64,000 nt of DNA from assembly GCF_000737315.1 (NCBI RefSeq), contig NZ_JMCB01000014.1, forward strand, positions 1 to 64,000, given 5' to 3'. The stretch comes from Hyalangium minutum (lineage in GTDB: Bacteria > Myxococcota > Myxococcia > Myxococcales > Myxococcaceae). A model generated the notes under the pieces. That model searched no databases. It was not told the origin of the DNA and was given only the letters and a program-made list of their open reading frames with translations. This document shows, piece after piece, positions 42,237-57,595 of this stretch. The position numbers and the translations under genes are program-made. The number at the start of each line of letters is the position of its first letter. The first letter of the stretch is position 1.

Positions 42237-42270
42237 CAGCGCCGGGGGATCCGAAGATCCCCCGGCGCTG
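42237..42270. terminator. Bidirectional hairpin between convergent genes
   Basis: CAGCGCCGGGGGATC-CGAA-GATCCCCCGGCGCTG, perfect 15-bp stem. Confidence 0.75.
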
Positions 42271-50799: not shown

Positions 50800-50861
50800 G
50801 TGGGACCAGGGTTTAACGCGGTTGCCCTCCGGTGGCGACCCTTCGTTGGGAGTGAGTGTCG

Positions 50862-52028
50862 ATGGCCGACGCCTATAGCAAGGACCTCGAGCGGTGGATT
50901 CCGCGACTCATCGCCGTCTGGAGGAAGGCTCGCCGCAAGGGCGATGGCCCTGAGACGCGACTGACGCCCCAGGAGGTGAAAGAGGTGGGAGCGGGCGTGA
51001 AGCAGCTCTCGCTCGGCCTCACCCGGGAGCGGCAGCTCGCCGGCGCCAAATACATGGACGACCCGAAGCTCCTGGGCGCCTACCTCCTCTTCTACTGGCC
51101 GGTGTCCTATGCCCAGGCGCGTCAGGCGCTCGGGGAGCTGCCGAACCGTCCCCGGCACGTGCTGGACCTGGGAAGTGGTCCAGGCCCGCTGGCCTTCGCC
51201 GCGCTGGATGCTGGAGCCCAGGAGGTGACCGCGGCCGACCGGAGCAAGCCCGCGCTGACGCTCGCCCGGGAACTTGCCACGGAGGCTGGCGAGGCGCTGG
51301 CCACCCGCGAGTGGGATCCAACGCGCAAGGCCCCTCTTCCCGAGGGCCAGTTCGATCTCATCACCATGGGCCACGTCCTCAATGAGCTGTACGGAACGGG
51401 GGACGGGGCCATCGGCCCTCGGGCCGCGCTGCTGGAGCAGGTGCTGGCGCAAGTGAAGAAGGGCGGGAGCCTGCTGGTGCTGGAACCAGCCTTGAAGGAG
51501 ACCTCGCGCGCCCTGCTCAAGGTGCGGGATGTGCTGGTGGGCAAGGGCTACGCGGTACGGGCGCCGTGCATGTTCCGAGGCAACTGTCCGGCGCTCATCA
51601 AGGAGAGCGACTGGTGCCACGCGGAGCGCTCGTGGCCCATGCCTCACGTGGTGGAGGAGCTGGCGCGGGCCGCGGGGCTGCACAAGGAGTCCCTGAAGAT
51701 GAGCTATCTGATGCTCGCGCCCAAGGGCGAGCCCTGGCCGGAGCTGCCTCAAGGCCGGCTCTTCCGCATCGTCTCCGAGCCGCTCGAGGGTAAGGGGCGC
51801 CAGCGCTACATCGGCTGTGGCCCCGAGGGCCGCGTGGGCCTGGCGATGCAGGAGAAGCACCGCACGGAGAAGAACGAGCGCTTCTTCAAGCTCTACCGTG
51901 GTGATGTCATCTCCGTGACTGAGACAGAGCCGAAGGGCGATGGGCTCGCGCTGGATGGCCGCTCCGAGCTGAAGATGGTCGCGCACGCGGGCAGGGGCAT
52001 ACCGCCTCCTTCCACCGAGAACCCATAA
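50862..52028 (+). CDS. Rsm22/METTL17-like SAM-dependent methyltransferase
   Basis: AYLLFYWP, VLDLGSGPG, HVLNEL, LVLEPA, APC..GNCP..DWCH. Confidence 0.8.
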   Translation: MADAYSKDLERWIPRLIAVWRKARRKGDGPETRLTPQEVKEVGAGVKQLSLGLTRERQLAGAKYMDDPKLLGAYLLFYWPVSYAQARQALGELPNRPRHVLDLGSGPGPLAFAALDAGAQEVTAADRSKPALTLARELATEAGEALATREWDPTRKAPLPEGQFDLITMGHVLNELYGTGDGAIGPRAALLEQVLAQVKKGGSLLVLEPALKETSRALLKVRDVLVGKGYAVRAPCMFRGNCPALIKESDWCHAERSWPMPHVVEELARAAGLHKESLKMSYLMLAPKGEPWPELPQGRLFRIVSEPLEGKGRQRYIGCGPEGRVGLAMQEKHRTEKNERFFKLYRGDVISVTETEPKGDGLALDGRSELKMVAHAGRGIPPPSTENP

Positions 52029-52059
52029 CCTCCCCTACCCTGTAGGGCGATGGGTCAGA

Positions 52060-52088
52060 TTGACAGGATGCTCACGTCCCTGCATCTT
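52060..52088 (+). promoter_or_regulatory. Sigma70-type promoter for the thr leader (predicted TSS at the ATG)
   Basis: TTGACA (52060-65), 17 nt, CATCTT (52083-88), 7 nt, ATG at 52096. Confidence 0.55.
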
Positions 52089-52095
52089 GTCCGCC

Positions 52096-52170
52096 ATGAA
52101 GTTCGTCCAGCTCACCACCACCACGACCACCACCACCCGCACTGGCGGGCCGGCGGTCGTGCGCACGTGA
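52096..52170 (+). CDS. Thr-rich leader peptide MKFVQLTTTTTTTTRTGGPAVVRT
   Basis: 8 consecutive Thr codons (10 of 24), 113 nt upstream of thrS, followed by alternative hairpins. Confidence 0.85.
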   Translation: MKFVQLTTTTTTTTRTGGPAVVRT

Positions 52171-52283
52171 GCTGAGCGCGCGGACACCGCAGCCCCGCCG
52201 GAACCACCGGACGGGGCGCACCGCACACTGCTTCAGCACCCCGCTCCGGTCCGGCTTTCCACCCACCGACACGGAGAACGCAC

Positions 52284-53477
52284 ATGCTGAGCGAACACGA
52301 TCATCGATCCCTGGGCGACCGCCTGGACCTCTTCCACCTGCAGGAGGAGGCCCCGGGCATGGTCTTCTGGCACCCCCGAGGGTTCATCCTGTACCAGCTC
52401 CTCGAGGAGCGCGTCCGCCGCGAGCTGGCCGCGGGCGGCTACCGCGAGGTGAGAACGCCTCAGATTCTCGGCCAGCGCATCTGGGAGAGCAGCGGCCACT
52501 GGCAGAACTTCCGCGAGGGCATGTTCGTGCTGGACGACGGCGAGCGGCCTTTTGCCATCAAACCGGTGAGCTGCCCGGGCCACATCCAGATCTTCCAGCG
52601 CATGGCCGCGTCCTTCCGCGCCCTGCCCCTGCGGCTGGCGGAGTTCGGGCTGGTGCACCGCAACGAGTCCTCCGGCGCGTTGCAGGGGCTGTTCCGCCTG
52701 CGGCAGTTCACGCAGGACGACGGCCACATCTTCTGCATGGAGGAGCAGGTGGCCGACGAGGTGGCCGCGTTCTGCCGCTCGCTGCGCGTCTTCTACCGGG
52801 ACTTTGGCTTCGAGGAAGTCCAGGTCGCCTTCAGCAGCCGCCCCGAGCAACGCGCGGGCAGCGATGAAGTCTGGGATCGCGCGGAGGCGGCGCTGCTGGA
52901 GGCCGCGGGGCGCGTCGGGCTCGACTGCCGGATGCAACCGGGCCAGGGGGCGTTCTACGGGCCGAAGCTGGAGTTCATCCTGAAGGACCGCTCGGGCCGC
53001 GAGTGGCAGTGCGGGACGATCCAGCTCGACTTCGTGCTGCCCGAGCGCTTCGACCTGCACTACGTGGACTCGGGCGGCGGGAAGCGGAGGCCGGCCATGC
53101 TGCACCGGGCGATCTTCGGCAGCGTGGAGCGCTTCCTGGGCATCCTGCTCGAGCACCACCAGGGCGCCCTGCCCGCGTGGCTCGCGCCGGAGCAGCTGCG
53201 CGTGCTGCCCGTGGGACCGGACTCGGAGGCCTACGCCTCGGCGGTCCGGAGGCGGCTGGAGGCGGCGGGGCTCCGGGTCAGCGAGGACGCGCGGGGCGAA
53301 ACGCTGTCGCGGCGGATCCTGGACTCCCACCGTGACAGCGTGCCGTTCGTCGTTCTGGTGGGGGCTCGGGAGCAGGCGGCGCTCTCGGTCCAGCTGCGAG
53401 AGCGAAGTGGAGCACAGCGGCAGGTGCCGCTGGAGGCCGCGGTTGCTGAGCTCCGGGAGGCGTGCCGGACGCCATAA
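52284..53477 (+). CDS. thrS: Threonyl-tRNA synthetase, short form (catalytic + anticodon domains only)
   Basis: Starts DHRSLG..LDLF. KPVSCPGH, VHRNE.SG, FYGPKLE, WQCGTIQLD, MLHRAIFGSVERF, WLAPEQ. Confidence 0.93.
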   Translation: MLSEHDHRSLGDRLDLFHLQEEAPGMVFWHPRGFILYQLLEERVRRELAAGGYREVRTPQILGQRIWESSGHWQNFREGMFVLDDGERPFAIKPVSCPGHIQIFQRMAASFRALPLRLAEFGLVHRNESSGALQGLFRLRQFTQDDGHIFCMEEQVADEVAAFCRSLRVFYRDFGFEEVQVAFSSRPEQRAGSDEVWDRAEAALLEAAGRVGLDCRMQPGQGAFYGPKLEFILKDRSGREWQCGTIQLDFVLPERFDLHYVDSGGGKRRPAMLHRAIFGSVERFLGILLEHHQGALPAWLAPEQLRVLPVGPDSEAYASAVRRRLEAAGLRVSEDARGETLSRRILDSHRDSVPFVVLVGAREQAALSVQLRERSGAQRQVPLEAAVAELREACRTP

Positions 53478-53487
53478 GCCTCATCCG

Positions 53488-53508
53488 GGGGGGCCTCTCA
53501 GGCCCCCT
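53488..53508 (+). terminator. Hairpin after thrS
   Basis: GGGGGCCT-CTC-AGGCCCCC, 8-bp stem. Confidence 0.45.
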
Positions 53509-53552
53509 CTGTGCAGGCAAGCACGAGGGCTCTGCTAGTGTGGCCACCCGCC

Positions 53553-54503
53553 ATGCCCTTGCGCTCTCTCTATCCCCCCATCGAGCCCTACAGCACCGGA
53601 CGCCTCCGCGTCTCCGCGCTCCACGAGCTCTACTTCGAGGAGAGCGGCAATCCCCAGGGAAAGCCTGTCCTCTTCGTCCACGGCGGCCCCGGCGGCGGCA
53701 CGGACGAGACGCAGCGGCGCTTCTTCGACCCTGCGGCTTACCGCATCGTGCTGTTCGATCAGCGCGGCTGCGGGAAGAGCACCCCGCACGCGAGCGTGGA
53801 GGAGAACACCACCTGGCACCTCGTGGAGGACATGGAGGCGCTGCGCCGCCACCTCGGCATCAAGCGGTGGATGGTCTTCGGGGGCTCGTGGGGCAGCACG
53901 CTCTCGCTGGCCTACGCGCAGAAGCACCCGGAGCACGTCTCGGAGCTGGTGCTGCGCGGCATCTTCCTGCTGCGCGTCCAGGAGATTCAGTGGTTCTACC
54001 AGCACGGGGCCCACCTGTTCTTCCCGGACGCCTGGGAGGACTTCCTGGCCCCCATCCCTCCCGAGGAGCGCGGAGATCTCGTCCAGGCCTACCACCGACG
54101 GCTCATGAGCAGCGATGCGCAAGTCCGCCAGACCGCAGCCAAGGCCTGGGCCATCTGGGAGGCCCGCACCAGCAACCTCAGGCCCAAGGCCGAAACCATC
54201 GCGCGCTACGGTGAGGACGAGTACTCGCTCGCCTTCTCGCGCATCGAGAGCCACTACTTCGTGAACCGGGGCTTCTTCCGCGGCGACAACCAGCTCCTCG
54301 AGGACGTGCCGCGCATCCGACATATCCCCGCCGTCATCGTCCAGGGGCGCTACGACATGCCCTGCCCCATCGAGAGCGCTTGGGCCCTGCACAAGGCCTG
54401 GCCCGAGGCCGAGCTGAAGATCATCCCGGACGCGGGCCACTCGGCCTATGAGCCCGGCACCACCTCCGCGCTCGTCGAGGCTACCGACATGTTCCGCCCG
54501 TAG
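53553..54503 (+). CDS. pip: Proline iminopeptidase
   Basis: LYPPIEPY, VHGGPGGG, FDQRGCGKSTP, FGGSWGS, GRYD..CP, AGHSAYE. Confidence 0.93.
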   Translation: MPLRSLYPPIEPYSTGRLRVSALHELYFEESGNPQGKPVLFVHGGPGGGTDETQRRFFDPAAYRIVLFDQRGCGKSTPHASVEENTTWHLVEDMEALRRHLGIKRWMVFGGSWGSTLSLAYAQKHPEHVSELVLRGIFLLRVQEIQWFYQHGAHLFFPDAWEDFLAPIPPEERGDLVQAYHRRLMSSDAQVRQTAAKAWAIWEARTSNLRPKAETIARYGEDEYSLAFSRIESHYFVNRGFFRGDNQLLEDVPRIRHIPAVIVQGRYDMPCPIESAWALHKAWPEAELKIIPDAGHSAYEPGTTSALVEATDMFRP

Positions 54504-54689: not shown

Positions 54690-55001
54690 ATGAGACCACA
54701 GGACACCTATGAGCAACTCGTGCCAGATGGCATGACAGAGCTCGACTTGACGCTCGAGGCCCAGGAAGGCTCAGTCGGAGACGGGACCATCCATGCCAAC
54801 AGCTGTGGCGGCTGTGGCGGCTGTGGCGGCTGTGGCGGTTGCGGGCACTGTCGCTGCGGCGGCTGCGGGCACTGCCGCTGCGGCGGTTGCGGTGGCTGCG
54901 GTAACTGCGGCAAATGCCACGGTCTCCGCGCCGATCAGACGGGCGAGGGAGACACCAAGCCCACCGGCTTCGCCCTGCTGGTGGCCCCTGCGAAGAGCTG
55001 A
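54690..55001 (+). CDS. RiPP precursor, heterocycloanthracin/sonorensin-like Cys-Gly-rich core
   Basis: SD AAGGGGGAAG. Acidic leader (TELDLTLE), core [40 protein letters not shown] (14 Cys), 26-aa tail. Directly upstream of E1-like/YcaO/SagB genes. Confidence 0.88.
54803..54882 (+). repeat. Coding tandem repeats within the precursor core
   Basis: CTGTGGCGG x4 (54803-54838) and two 24-bp GGCGGxTGCGGGCACTGyCGCTGC units. Confidence 0.85.
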
Positions 55002-55114
55002 GCCTGGATAGAGGAAGCACACGGGGTGGGGCCTTGCTGCCTCCACCCCTGGCCTTCTCTCCACTCACTTCAGAAATGACCTTTCATCCCCCTCTTCAGA
55101 AATGGAGCTGCTCC

Positions 55115-56194
55115 ATGACACCCGAGCAGAGCGCCCTGCACTTGCGCCTGGAGCCGTACCTGACCGTGGTATCGGACGGAGACACCCATGCCCACCTCAT
55201 GGTGGGCGAGAAGGTCCTGCTGCGCTGCCGCGGCCGCCTCGTGCCCCTGCTCACCTCCCGGCTGCTGCCGAGCCTGGATGGCTCCCTCAGCGTGCAGGAG
55301 GTGTGTGAGCAACTCGACGAGGTGCTCCCCCGGAAGTCCACCCTCTCCCTGCTGGACCTGCTGCTGCGGCACCGGGTGGTGTACGAAACCTCAGCCGAGC
55401 GGCAGCTGCCGCCGCAGGCTGTCGAGGCTTTTGGCGGCCTGATCCACCTGCTCGGCCGCCTCTCCGCGGGCCCCTTCGAGCTGCTGCAATCTCTGCTGGC
55501 GTCGCGGGTGGCCGTGGTGGGGGACTCGCCGCTGGTGCGGGACATCGCTCAGGCCCTGGGGGGCTGCGCCATCGGTCAGGTGGAGCTGCTCTCGGATAGG
55601 GCCATCGCGGCCATCCCTGAGCAGCCCTTCGTGCGCGTGCGCGCCCACCCGCTCGAGGCGCTGGAGGAGGTGGTACCCGGCTGCGCCCTGGTGGTGGGTG
55701 TGCAGGATGGGGACTTCGCGGCGCTGCCCCTCCTTCGCAAGCTCAACCGGTACTGCGTCGCCGAGGGCGCAAGCTGGCTGCACGTGCGGCTCACGCTGGA
55801 GGGCAAGGCCTGGCTGGGCCCCCTGTACATGCAGGACGAGGCCTGCTTCGAATGCGTGAGGCTGCGGTTCAAGAACAACCTCGAGACCTGGCGCGAGAGC
55901 AGCCTGCACGAGCTGGGCGCCCAGCGTGGGGAGCTGCCCGTGCGGCGCCTCGGGCACCCGCCGCTCCAGGCCCAGGTGGGCACCATGGTCGCGACCCAGG
56001 TGCTGCGCATCCTCTCCCACGCCGGCCCGCCCCCCCTGGCCAGCCGAGTGCAGCTGGTGGACCTGCTCACCCTGGAGAGCCACCTGCACACCGTGCTCAA
56101 GCACCCGCTGTGCCCTGTTTGCAGCCGGGCGCAGCAAGGCCCATCGTTCCCATGGGAAGAAGAGGACCTGCAGCTCGACCGGCTGCTGGTGTGA
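55115..56194 (+). CDS. TOMM E1/ThiF-like cyclodehydratase partner (C protein) with N-terminal RRE-like region
   Basis: LLPSLDGSLS..winged-helix segment, RVAVVGD, AWLGPL, ACFEC and HPLCPVC. Confidence 0.85.
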   Translation: MTPEQSALHLRLEPYLTVVSDGDTHAHLMVGEKVLLRCRGRLVPLLTSRLLPSLDGSLSVQEVCEQLDEVLPRKSTLSLLDLLLRHRVVYETSAERQLPPQAVEAFGGLIHLLGRLSAGPFELLQSLLASRVAVVGDSPLVRDIAQALGGCAIGQVELLSDRAIAAIPEQPFVRVRAHPLEALEEVVPGCALVVGVQDGDFAALPLLRKLNRYCVAEGASWLHVRLTLEGKAWLGPLYMQDEACFECVRLRFKNNLETWRESSLHELGAQRGELPVRRLGHPPLQAQVGTMVATQVLRILSHAGPPPLASRVQLVDLLTLESHLHTVLKHPLCPVCSRAQQGPSFPWEEEDLQLDRLLV

Positions 56195-56215
56195 GGTGGA
56201 AGGAGGTGGAAGGCC

Positions 56216-57595
56216 ATGCAAGTTCCCCACGAAGGGCAGCTCCAACGGACCATCCAGTTGCGCCTCGAGGAGGAGCCGGCGCGATGGGTTCCCCTCGAGC
56301 GCCTGAAACACCTGGTCAGCCCCCTGCTGGGCATCTGCCAGAGCCTCACCCGGCTGCCGATCCGGCCCGGGGAGCCCCTGTTGCCGCAGTACGACGCGAA
56401 GTTGGCGCGGATGGGCCCGCGCGCCGCTCACCAGACGCGCGAGGGCTGCTGCGGCATCGGCTACACCGACGAGGTAGCGCAGGCCGCGGCGCTGGGCGAG
56501 GCGGCAGAGACCTGGAGCGCCGCCTGCGTGGACCTGGAGCGTGTGCGCCTCTCCACCTGGCGGGAGCTGAGCCGTGAGCACGCAGCGCTGGAGCCCGAAC
56601 GCTTTGCCCTCTACTCCGAGCGGCAGTACCAGACGCCTGGATTCCCCTACGCCCCCTTCACCCGAGACACCCCCGTGGGCTGGGTCGAGGGCTGGTCGCT
56701 CGTGCGGCGCGCGCCGGTGTGGGTACCGGCCAGCCGCGTCTACTTGCCCTACGAACACCTGCCGGGCGAGCCCAACATCGGCTTCCAGTGCTCGACAGGC
56801 CTGGCGGCCGGAGGCTCTCTCGCACAGGCCATCCTCTCGGGGCTGTGCGAGGACTTCGAGCGGGATGCCTTCATCCTCTTCTGGCTGGACGAGCTGCCCG
56901 CGCGGCGCGTGCACTTGGAGGGCTCGAGCCTGTGGCGGCGCTTCGAGACCCACTTCGCCGTGCCCGGCTACGAGTACCGCATCTACGACGTGACCAACGA
57001 CGTGGGCGTGCCCACGGCCCTCGTGCTGCTCATCTGCCCCTCGGCGCACGGCGAGTTGTACCTGGCCGGGGCCGCCTCGCGTCCCCGCTGGGACCAGGCC
57101 GTCGAGAAGGCGCTGCTGGAGGCCGTGCAAGGCCGGCCCTTCATCCTCTCTCTGCTGCAGGAGGATCCGGACTGGCAGCCCGGGCCGGACTTCTCGAACG
57201 TGGTGGACTTCGACGCCCACGGCCGGCTGTACACGTCCGTCCGGGAACTCACACCCGTGCTCCTGGGAATCGAGGATCGGGTGACGGCCCACGTGCCGCT
57301 CGCGTCGCTTCCGCGGCTGGGAGGCGATGACCTGCCTGGGGACATCGCGTGGCTCGTGGGGCGCCTGGCCGAGCGGGGCTACGAGGCGGTGGTGGTGGAC
57401 CTGACCACGCCCGATGTGGCATCGCTGGGGCTGCGCGTCGTCAAGGTGCTCACCCCAGAGCTCCAGCCGCTGCACGGGGACCACCATCACCCGCACCTGG
57501 GTGGCGAGCGCATCCGCGAGGTGCCGGTGCGGCTGGGCGTGCGCAGTCCCCACGAGCCGCCCCGCATCAACCCCTACCCACACCCCTTCGCCTGA
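56216..57595 (+). CDS. YcaO cyclodehydratase (D protein)
   Basis: AALGEAAET, STGLAAG, GLCEDFERDA, EKALLEA, Pro-rich C-terminus INPYPHPFA. Confidence 0.92.
   Translation: MQVPHEGQLQRTIQLRLEEEPARWVPLERLKHLVSPLLGICQSLTRLPIRPGEPLLPQYDAKLARMGPRAAHQTREGCCGIGYTDEVAQAAALGEAAETWSAACVDLERVRLSTWRELSREHAALEPERFALYSERQYQTPGFPYAPFTRDTPVGWVEGWSLVRRAPVWVPASRVYLPYEHLPGEPNIGFQCSTGLAAGGSLAQAILSGLCEDFERDAFILFWLDELPARRVHLEGSSLWRRFETHFAVPGYEYRIYDVTNDVGVPTALVLLICPSAHGELYLAGAASRPRWDQAVEKALLEAVQGRPFILSLLQEDPDWQPGPDFSNVVDFDAHGRLYTSVRELTPVLLGIEDRVTAHVPLASLPRLGGDDLPGDIAWLVGRLAERGYEAVVVDLTTPDVASLGLRVVKVLTPELQPLHGDHHHPHLGGERIREVPVRLGVRSPHEPPRINPYPHPFA

Follow-up and report, generated by a model that had tools for sequence, protein, structure and literature searches.

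The DNA considered here is a stretch of 64,000 nucleotides from Hyalangium minutum (contig NZ_JMCB01000014.1, positions 1 to 64,000; referred to below as the window), in which a gene for a short threonyl-tRNA synthetase (ThrRS), located at 52284–53477 on the forward strand, is preceded by a leader that carries a small upstream open reading frame (uORF) with a run of threonine codons and a chain of RNA segments able to pair in alternative ways. Judged by its preservation among related bacteria, the leader is a real conserved regulatory element, and it is proposed, with a probability of about 0.75, to be an attenuator of the leader-peptide type, in which a ribosome senses charged tRNA-Thr, and to control the gene of a truncated, editing-less ThrRS. 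All of the evidence for the attenuator is computational.

Organization of the Leader

Read from 5′ to 3′ on the forward strand, the leader begins with a –35 hexamer, TTGACA, at 52060–52065 and a –10 hexamer, CATCTT, at 52083–52088, which are separated by a spacer of 17 nt; after a further 7 nt of pyrimidine-rich sequence (GTCCGCC), the uORF starts with ATG at 52096. The uORF (52096–52170) encodes a leader peptide of 24 codons, MKFVQLTTTTTTTTRTGGPAVVRT, terminates with TGA at 52168–52170 and is located 113 nt upstream of the ThrRS reading frame. Eight consecutive Thr codons (ACC seven times and ACG once) occupy 52114–52137; they are the putative regulatory codons and at the same time the 5′ part of the first RNA segment, and they represent the only run of at least five Thr in a six-frame translation of the window.

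For the analysis of pairing, the leader was split into six segments. The pairing part of segment 1 (CACGACC...CCCGC), which consists of Thr codons and CCCGC, extends over 52122–52140 and has segment 2 as its partner; segment 2 (GGCGGG followed by GGTCGTGCGCACG, that is, GGCGGG...GTGCGC) is situated at 52144–52167, in the 3′ half of the uORF. The stop codon comes after the GTGCGC part of segment 2 and before segment 3, in the window as well as in Myxococcus xanthus and the other leaders that were read directly. Segment 3 (GCGCGCGG...ACCGC, A and GCCCCGCCGG) at 52176–52201 is composed of a lower-stem strand and GCCCCGCC, and serves both as the 3′ strand of the antiterminator and as the 5′ arm of a terminator-like hairpin, whose 3′ arm is segment 4 (CCGGACGGGGCGCACCGC, composed of CCGGNCGGGGC and a lower-stem strand) at 52207–52224. 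Segment 5 (CCCCGCTCCGGTCCGG; GCUCCGNCCGG) at 52239–52254 is the segment complementary to the Shine–Dalgarno (SD) sequence, with CTCC at 52244–52247, and segment 6, CCGACACGGAG (CCG..CGGAG), at 52266–52276 contains the SD of the ThrRS gene, GGAG, at 52273–52276.

Much of this arrangement had been described in an initial annotation made from the sequence by itself. The positions that it gave for TTGACA-17-CATCTT and the uORF ATG (52060–52065, 52083–52088 and 52096) all check, and the eight consecutive Thr codons are found at 52114–52137 with the stop at 52168–52170. It had further pointed to pairing of CACGACC (52122–52128) with GGTCGTG (52155–52161) and of GCGGT (52153–52157) with ACCGC (52186–52190), and both complementarities are present; the hairpin at 52192–52217 and the alternative pairing of its 3′ arm with 52239–52249 are likewise present, the minimum free energy of 52207–52254 being −23.4 kcal/mol. 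The absence of the editing domain from the synthetase and the hairpin that locks the SD were both missed. The motif of the hairpin at 52192–52217 is unique within the 64-kb window, and the idea of a repeated genomic element was rejected on account of this single occurrence.

Conservation of the Leader and Its uORF

Twenty-six leaders were compared, namely 15 protein-anchored Myxococcota loci, with the window counted among them, and 11 leaders from metagenomes. The protein-anchored scan of contigs returned mostly full-length proteobacterial thrS genes, and 5 of its 80 loci were useful; nine more loci were obtained from named genomes by exact-protein look-up. The loci represent Hyalangium, Stigmatella, two Myxococcus, Corallococcus, Melittangium, Archangium, Aggregicoccus and a Myxococcaceae isolate, and further Sorangium, Byssovorax, a Polyangiaceae metagenome-assembled genome (MAG) and two Kofleriaceae MAGs. 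The metagenome leaders come from a scan of DNA with a sequence pattern, which gave 119 matches; 11 of these are leaders followed by a truncated thrS, while the other 108 are chance matches without thrS, none of which combines a Thr-run uORF with the hairpin.

A small Thr-rich ORF was found 87–130 nt upstream of the truncated thrS in each of the 15 protein-anchored loci, and a Thr-rich uORF stands in the same place in all 26 loci. The encoded peptides have 22–36 residues, with 5–9 Thr in the best 10-codon stretch. The frame, the start and the stop of the uORF are maintained among the orthologs, and the Thr codons interchange synonymously (ACC 109, ACG 66 and ACT 29 over the 26 leaders); conservation of frame, start, stop and Thr identity together with synonymous variation can be explained only by translation of the uORF. 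The flanking genes vary between genera and include those for an Rsm22-like methyltransferase, GFA, an OPT transporter, catalase and others, and because of these differing flanks the leader and thrS are taken to travel as a unit.

Alternative Helices

The RNA of the leader folds far better than expected from its composition, with z = −5.0 relative to dinucleotide shuffles and none of 200 shuffles being as good. When folded in isolation, the neighbouring segments of the window give energies of −24.0 (1:2), −35.6 (2:3), −26.7 (3:4), −23.4 (4:5) and −12.0 kcal/mol (5:6), values that are to be read in light of an approximate energy model. Segment pairs of the 26 leaders were also scored as duplexes against dinucleotide shuffles, and the mean z values were −2.0 for 1:2, −2.8 for 2:3, −3.2 for 3:4, −1.4 for 4:5 and −1.1 for 5:6, with all ten non-adjacent pairs falling between −0.2 and +0.5. 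Complementarity is thus confined to adjacent segments and forms a chain of neighbours, which is the pattern that alternative pairing predicts.

A second type of evidence comes from exchanging partners between species. Among 18 non-redundant species, the cognate partner was better than swapped partners for 1:2 (p = 0.015), 2:3 (p = 0.0017) and 3:4 (p = 0.0038) and marginally so for 5:6 (p = 0.065), and the control segment pairs gave no sign of co-evolution. Similarly, in the subset of cleanly alignable leaders of the Myxococcus/Archangium type, 87% of the cells of the OFF structure (1:2 + 3:4) are paired, compared with 36–46% when the partner is slid, and six pairs show compensatory changes, three of them in 3:4, which was matched by 1 of 500 shuffles; for the antiterminator 2:3 of the same subset, 91% of the cells are paired as against 40–56% in the slid arrangement. 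RNAalifold applied to all 26 leaders returned a consensus made of pieces of the antiterminator (2:3) only, because the competing folds cancel out.

At the level of single motifs, GGCGGG is identical in 24 of the 26 leaders, the third positions of its Gly codons included, and occurs in another reading frame in Corallococcus; since it is kept as a nucleotide sequence even across frames, the constraint acts on the RNA and not on the peptide. The motif GCTCCG(N)CCGG of segment 5 is also conserved among the leaders. Comparison of the leaders thus shows, at the level of predicted pairing, that helices 1:2, 2:3 and 3:4 exist, are conserved and exclude one another, and that the SD is sequestered. The alignment of orthologous leaders had been named in the initial annotation as a check on its proposal of a Thr-codon leader with alternative pairings before a ThrRS gene, and the proposal is borne out, the uORF and helices 1:2, 2:3 and 3:4 being kept in 26 of 26 leaders.

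Promoter Geometry and Start of the uORF

The promoter-like hexamers are conserved with respect to the uORF. In 24 of the 26 leaders, TTGAC recurs at the same distance upstream of the uORF, and the –10 position is occupied by CAYYTT- or TANNNT-type sequences; the spacer between the two is about 17 nt in most leaders, as judged by eye. The –10 hexamer of the window agrees with TATAAT at 3 of 6 positions and is therefore weak by the E. coli consensus, and neither a leader promoter nor a leader terminator was flagged by a scan with E. coli-type consensus sequences; the weak CATCTT gains credibility because the hexamer is conserved in the orthologs. From the first base of the –35 hexamer to the uORF start codon, the distance is 34–39 nt, with 18 of the 26 leaders having exactly 36 nt; from the end of the –10 hexamer to the start codon it is 6–7 nt in 20 leaders and 9–10 nt in five. 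Most of the leaders have a pyrimidine directly before the purine of the start codon.

Because this spacing is conserved, transcription is expected to begin on the purine of the start codon or 1–3 nt from it, which leaves no space for an SD. No purine-rich SD precedes ATG 52096 in the window, as the initial annotation had stated, and room for one is found in 0 of the 26 leaders. The leaderless start that it had also proposed is supported indirectly by the conserved geometry and the lack of room for an SD, these being features of geometry only: the 5′ end of the transcript would lie at the ATG at 52096 or within 1 nt of it. The literature on Myxococcus that was searched yielded no study of leaderless mRNAs.

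The Truncated Threonyl-tRNA Synthetase

The gene at 52284–53477 (+) encodes a ΔN ThrRS of 397 aa, consisting of the class II core and the anticodon-binding domain. Its Pfam matches are PF00587 and PF03129 only, the TGS and editing domains being missing, and it thus lacks part of the full ThrRS domain set (N1/TGS, N2 editing, core and anticodon-binding); its match to TIGR00418 covers model positions 169–563 of 565, with a score of 454.7 against a cutoff of 383.65. It aligns with approximately residues 241–615 of E. coli ThrRS (1evk, 1qf6). In the numbering of the 1evk alignment, the protein has counterparts of the zinc ligands C334, H385 and H511, Y225-G226 of the FYG motif corresponds to Y462-G463, and L252 corresponds to L489. 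Homologs of about 400 aa are found throughout Myxococcota with 62–95% identity, the best Hyalangium matches having 91–92%, and a full-length thrS presumably coexists with them in these genomes. The initial annotation had named the downstream gene thrS; it is indeed a ThrRS gene, but its product is a truncated, paralog-type protein of 397 aa and not a full-length enzyme.

By its domain content, the 397-aa protein is the catalytic module of a ThrRS without the editing domain. A mutant of the Anabaena T2 ThrRS without the subdomains N1 and N2 is devoid of editing activity (PMC4787780), and for this reason the truncated enzyme is expected, by analogy, to be prone to Ser errors. ObaO, a ThrRS resistant to obafluorin and borrelidin, owes its resistance to a G463S change (PMC11252418); an ObaO-type inhibitor-resistant enzyme was considered and rejected, since the equivalent of Gly463 is kept and is not Ser or Ala.

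In some relatives the annotated protein is longer, with 422 aa in M. stipitatus (P0060) and 421 aa in M. fulvus (P0069), which is about 20 residues more than in the other relatives. These entries probably have a start codon annotated into the leader region, an over-extension that would arise because the uORF and the leader are unannotated.

Proposed Mechanism

From the Thr codons and the arrangement of the helices we infer that the leader senses Thr-tRNA, and the following course of events is envisaged. Transcription would start at or beside the A of the uORF ATG, and the uORF would be translated as a leaderless message. With Thr-tRNA plentiful, the ribosome would pass the eight Thr codons, reach the stop at 52168 and cover the GTGCGC part of segment 2 or, once released, permit 1:2; segment 3 would then pair with segment 4 to give the hairpin at 52176–52224, and segment 5 would be free to lock the thrS SD (5:6), the gene being OFF. 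With Thr-tRNA scarce, a ribosome stalled in the Thr run would mask segment 1, and segment 2 (GGCGGG...GTGCGC) would form a long antiterminator with segment 3; the 3:4 hairpin would be blocked and the gene ON. In divergent relatives that have a U-tract, the hairpin would bring about plain intrinsic termination.

For the lineage without a U-tract, the output can be described only tentatively: in the ON state, segment 4 would capture the anti-SD segment 5, and the mRNA of the OFF state, left untranslated, would be cut short by termination that is either assisted by the hairpin or dependent on Rho, a combination that is given somewhat less than an even chance. A more far-reaching version, in which all six segments act as a relay with the states 1:2 + 3:4 + 5:6 or 2:3 + 4:5, so that stalling on a leaderless poly-Thr uORF opens the thrS ribosome-binding site (RBS) without an intrinsic terminator and turns on an emergency ThrRS that lacks editing upon failure of the housekeeping enzyme, is regarded as unlikely; if it were true, the triggers could be Thr limitation, oxidative damage or ThrRS-targeting, borrelidin-like compounds of soil competitors.

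Several observations weigh against the proposed attenuator or against parts of it. On the side of sampling, 11 of the 26 leaders were retrieved by a pattern that required ACCAC, GGCGGG, GTGYG and CCCCGCC, and the 26 leaders are phylogenetically related, for which reason the p-values are not independent tests. The uORF begins with GTG in 17 of the 26 leaders and would there need leaderless GUG initiation, a process known from mycobacteria. The antiterminator 2:3 is conserved in its pairing and nearly devoid of compensatory change in the close subset, and the pair 4:5 gave no co-evolution signal when partners were swapped (p = 0.34). A U-tract after the 3:4 hairpin is absent from the window and from 23 of the 26 leaders, so that the hairpin is not a canonical terminator. 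In the folding calculations, the SD remains paired at equilibrium even under a stalled ribosome, which leaves a simple thermodynamic relay unsupported, and when the antiterminator is locked, the mean probability of the SD being unpaired is 0.15 and is close to 0 for leaders of the Myxococcus, Archangium and Melittangium types.

Mode of Output and Alternative Explanations

The missing U-tract counts against a classical intrinsic-termination attenuator, not against alternative folding controlled by a ribosome. As the initial annotation had stated, no U-tract follows the hairpin and the leader is rich in C and poor in G; the spacer at 52171–52283 has 45% C, 28% G and 8% T, and the means over the 26 leaders are 40% C and 29% G. 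A U-rich tail does follow the equivalent hairpin in three divergent orthologs, L189 (GGGGCCUUGUCUUUUU), L107 (GCGCGGUUUUUU) and L003, and for this reason intrinsic termination was probably the ancestral output. The output had been proposed in the initial annotation to be Rho-dependent or translational and not intrinsic; this is a hypothesis in agreement with the lack of a U-tract here.

Canonical terminators are altogether a poor guide in this genome. In positions 1–60000 of the window, 16 terminator-like hairpins with a U-tract were found compared with about 20 expected from shuffles (per 20 kb, 8, 5 and 3 against 7.0, 7.0 and 6.2), and since they are no commoner than in shuffled sequence, terminators without U are the rule here and the missing U-tract is not diagnostic of the mechanism. 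No sigma-70 consensus promoter was found in the same 60,000 positions, and simple E. coli-type scans for promoters and terminators are nearly blind here. The sole convincing terminator of the window is located at 42270–42237 on the reverse strand, with a 15-bp stem followed by CUGUUUUCAG.

The state of the SD is the point on which a purely translational relay would turn. Systems of the ermC/cat type and the actinobacterial ileS T-box type work by translational attenuation with a sequestered SD; in this explanation, an arrangement like that of ermC would comprise six segments, no premature termination would take place, and the choice between 2:3 and 3:4 would decide whether segment 4 captures segment 5 and releases the SD from 5:6. 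The partner of the thrS SD is the conserved CUCC in segment 5 (helix 5:6), and this sequestration is conserved and non-random: the probability of the SD being unpaired is about 0.01 in the window and 0.05 on average over the 26 leaders, compared with 0.27 when the spacers are shuffled. Helix 4:5 of the window, at −23.4 kcal/mol, outweighs helix 5:6 at −12.0 kcal/mol, and the mean z of −1.4 for 4:5 stands out from the control pairs 2:5, 4:6 and 3:5, which score near 0. Opening of the RBS is 2.4 kcal/mol cheaper when the ribosome is stalled on the Thr codons than when it is at the stop, as seen in 23 of 26 leaders, and the cost under the stalled ribosome is still 5–13 kcal/mol. Once the antiterminator is locked, several leaders expose the SD with a probability of 0.2–0.7 (window 0.20, Hyalangium 0.38, Sorangium 0.68, Polyangiaceae MAG 0.59 and L189 0.30), and the lack of a U-tract also suits a purely translational output; a 4:5 relay that frees the SD is therefore plausible, as a matter of modelling, in the lineage of the window. 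Against it stand the lack of co-evolution of 4:5, the SD that stays closed in Myxococcus-type leaders despite a locked antiterminator, and the real U-tract terminators of three orthologs, by which termination is at least part of the repertoire of the family. As a complete account of the leader, the translational relay is regarded as unlikely.

Rho-dependent attenuation, in which fast read-through of the uORF would expose the C-rich untranslated spacer or the thrS mRNA to Rho, and ribosome stalling or translation of thrS would prevent this, is rather improbable. It would suit a spacer that is rich in C and poor in G, the lack of a U-tract in a window where canonical terminators are not enriched, and a sequestered SD that would leave the mRNA exposed; on the other hand, the 113-nt spacer is predicted to be almost wholly paired (z = −5.0), offering little single-stranded RNA for loading, and the alignment of the leaders reveals no conserved C-rich tract that is free of structure.

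The thrS gene of E. coli has an operator in the leader through which it is regulated, and the N-terminal domain of the E. coli ThrRS is needed to block the ribosome. That the uORF is untranslated here and the leader is a binding site for protein or tRNA after the E. coli thrS fashion of tRNA-Thr mimicry, a T-box-like element or a riboswitch would agree with the high degree of structure in the leader and with the E. coli precedent but is scarcely credible, since the orthologs preserve the reading frame, its start and stop and the Thr residues while the codons vary synonymously, no relevant Rfam match, T-box and Thr_leader included, was obtained at E ≤ 10, the enzyme has no N-terminal domain, and the hairpin loops vary (AACCA here, UUCUCC in M. 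xanthus) and hold no conserved Thr anticodon-like triplet, which in itself led to the rejection of E. coli-type operator mimicry.

Comparison with Known Systems

The ribosome-mediated attenuator proposed here resembles the classical attenuators of E. coli (trpL, thrL-thrABC, hisL and pheM-pheST) in having a short ORF in which codons for the amino acid to be sensed follow one another, segments 1–4 with the exclusive pairings 1:2, 2:3 and 3:4, and a stop codon placed so that the terminating ribosome masks segment 2; pheST is, moreover, itself a case in which an aminoacyl-tRNA synthetase is regulated. Unlike them, it has no SD before the uORF and, in this lineage, no U-tract, and it possesses an extra conserved SD-sequestering helix, a truncated paralog-type ThrRS as its target, and no match to the Rfam Thr_leader family. 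An Rfam cmscan of 51000–53500 at E ≤ 10 gave only chance-level hits to mir-3154 and Actino-pnp, both elsewhere, and no match to the covariance models of RF00506 (Thr_leader) or the T-box. No description of the element turned up in a full-text search of the literature on leader peptides of thrS and on attenuators and ThrRS of Myxococcus.

The closest parallels in start and target are found in Streptomyces. RNA-seq of S. lividans TK24 revealed leaderless leader peptides in thrL-thrS, leuL2-leuS, trpL2-trpS and alaL-alaS; for thrL and trpL2, a hairpin without a U-rich tail was described, and the termination was called 'not clear' (PMC8079986). These leaders share with the present one a uORF, here predicted to be leaderless, before a synthetase gene in a genome of high G+C content (68% in the window), and thrL and trpL2 share with it also a hairpin that lacks a U-rich tail. 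They differ in that Streptomyces ThrL, MKRVRPFLETTPGFVPAR, contains only two Thr, bears no similarity to the Hyalangium peptide and belongs to another phylum; in that they rest on RNA-seq of one strain, whereas the element here rests on the conservation of alternative helices in 26 leaders; and in that the Streptomyces target bears the plain annotation of a threonine-tRNA ligase, whereas here it is a ΔN enzyme. Attenuators upstream of trpS and leuS in Streptomyces and of pheST in γ-proteobacteria were predicted by Seliverstov et al., as were leader peptides that precede the cys operons of mycobacteria and have no terminators (PMC1262725). Terminator-less codon-run leaders from a high-GC organism with few canonical terminators likewise combine a codon run with no recognisable intrinsic terminator; they precede biosynthesis genes and are without conserved alternative hairpins, whereas a full 1-2-3-4 arrangement and a synthetase gene are found here.

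With respect to the logic of regulation, B. subtilis thrZ encodes a second ThrRS that is induced through a T-box when charging drops. Both systems would thus induce an auxiliary ThrRS on falling tRNA-Thr charging; the sensor of thrZ is uncharged tRNA on the T-box RNA, whereas here it would be a ribosome on Thr codons, in a leader with no T-box match. With respect to the protein, an engineered E. coli ΔN-ThrRS (242–642; 1evk, 1evl) has its natural counterpart in the window protein, which begins at the equivalent of about residue 241 and keeps the zinc ligands; unlike the engineered fragment, the truncation here is natural and conserved across the phylum. A further parallel is the T2 enzyme of Anabaena, a duplicated ThrRS that is induced by stress and impaired in editing (PMC4787780), with the difference that induction is here predicted to occur via Thr-tRNA, not zinc.

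Outside the myxobacteria, a Thr-run ORF before thrS was found in only 2 of the 70 thrS loci scanned, both from Vogesella species (Betaproteobacteria; L044 and L073, about 2113–2290). In these, a uORF led by an SD, MFKRTTTTRTSR followed by a stop codon, stands before a full-length thrS and directly after a tRNA gene, and is followed by a canonical terminator (GUGCGGCUCGAGCCGCAC and U9); this is a classical Thr attenuator of an unrelated lineage.

Significance and Neighbouring Genes

If the proposed attenuator operates as described, leader-peptide attenuation of a synthetase gene would be extended to Myxococcota, a phylum for which none is described in the searchable literature and no Rfam family exists, and a candidate leaderless regulatory uORF would be known outside Actinobacteria. 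A conserved, regulated and naturally editing-less ThrRS would, if induced by low Thr-tRNA, raise the question of translational fidelity under starvation or antibiotic stress. In addition, the set of 26 leaders could seed an RNA family model and improve the annotation of myxobacterial genomes in which the uORF is uncalled.

Upstream of the leader, a gene at 50856–52028 (+) encodes an Rsm22-like SAM-dependent methyltransferase (PF09243, E = 1e-20); an Rsm22-like gene also lies upstream of the leader in Hyalangium versicolor and not in the other genera. Downstream, thrS and an alpha/beta-hydrolase gene (53511–54503) are followed closely by a RiPP-like cluster at 54690–57595 (+), which is not linked to thrS in Hyalangium versicolor. 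The cluster consists of a 103-aa ORF with a Cys/Gly-rich core (54690–55001), a ThiF/E1-like ORF (54914–56194; weak PF00899) that overlaps or follows it, and a gene for a YcaO cyclodehydratase (56216–57595; PF02624, E = 5e-75). Judged by this gene content, it looks like a locus for a thiazole/oxazole-modified peptide of the heterocycloanthracin or microcin B17-like type.

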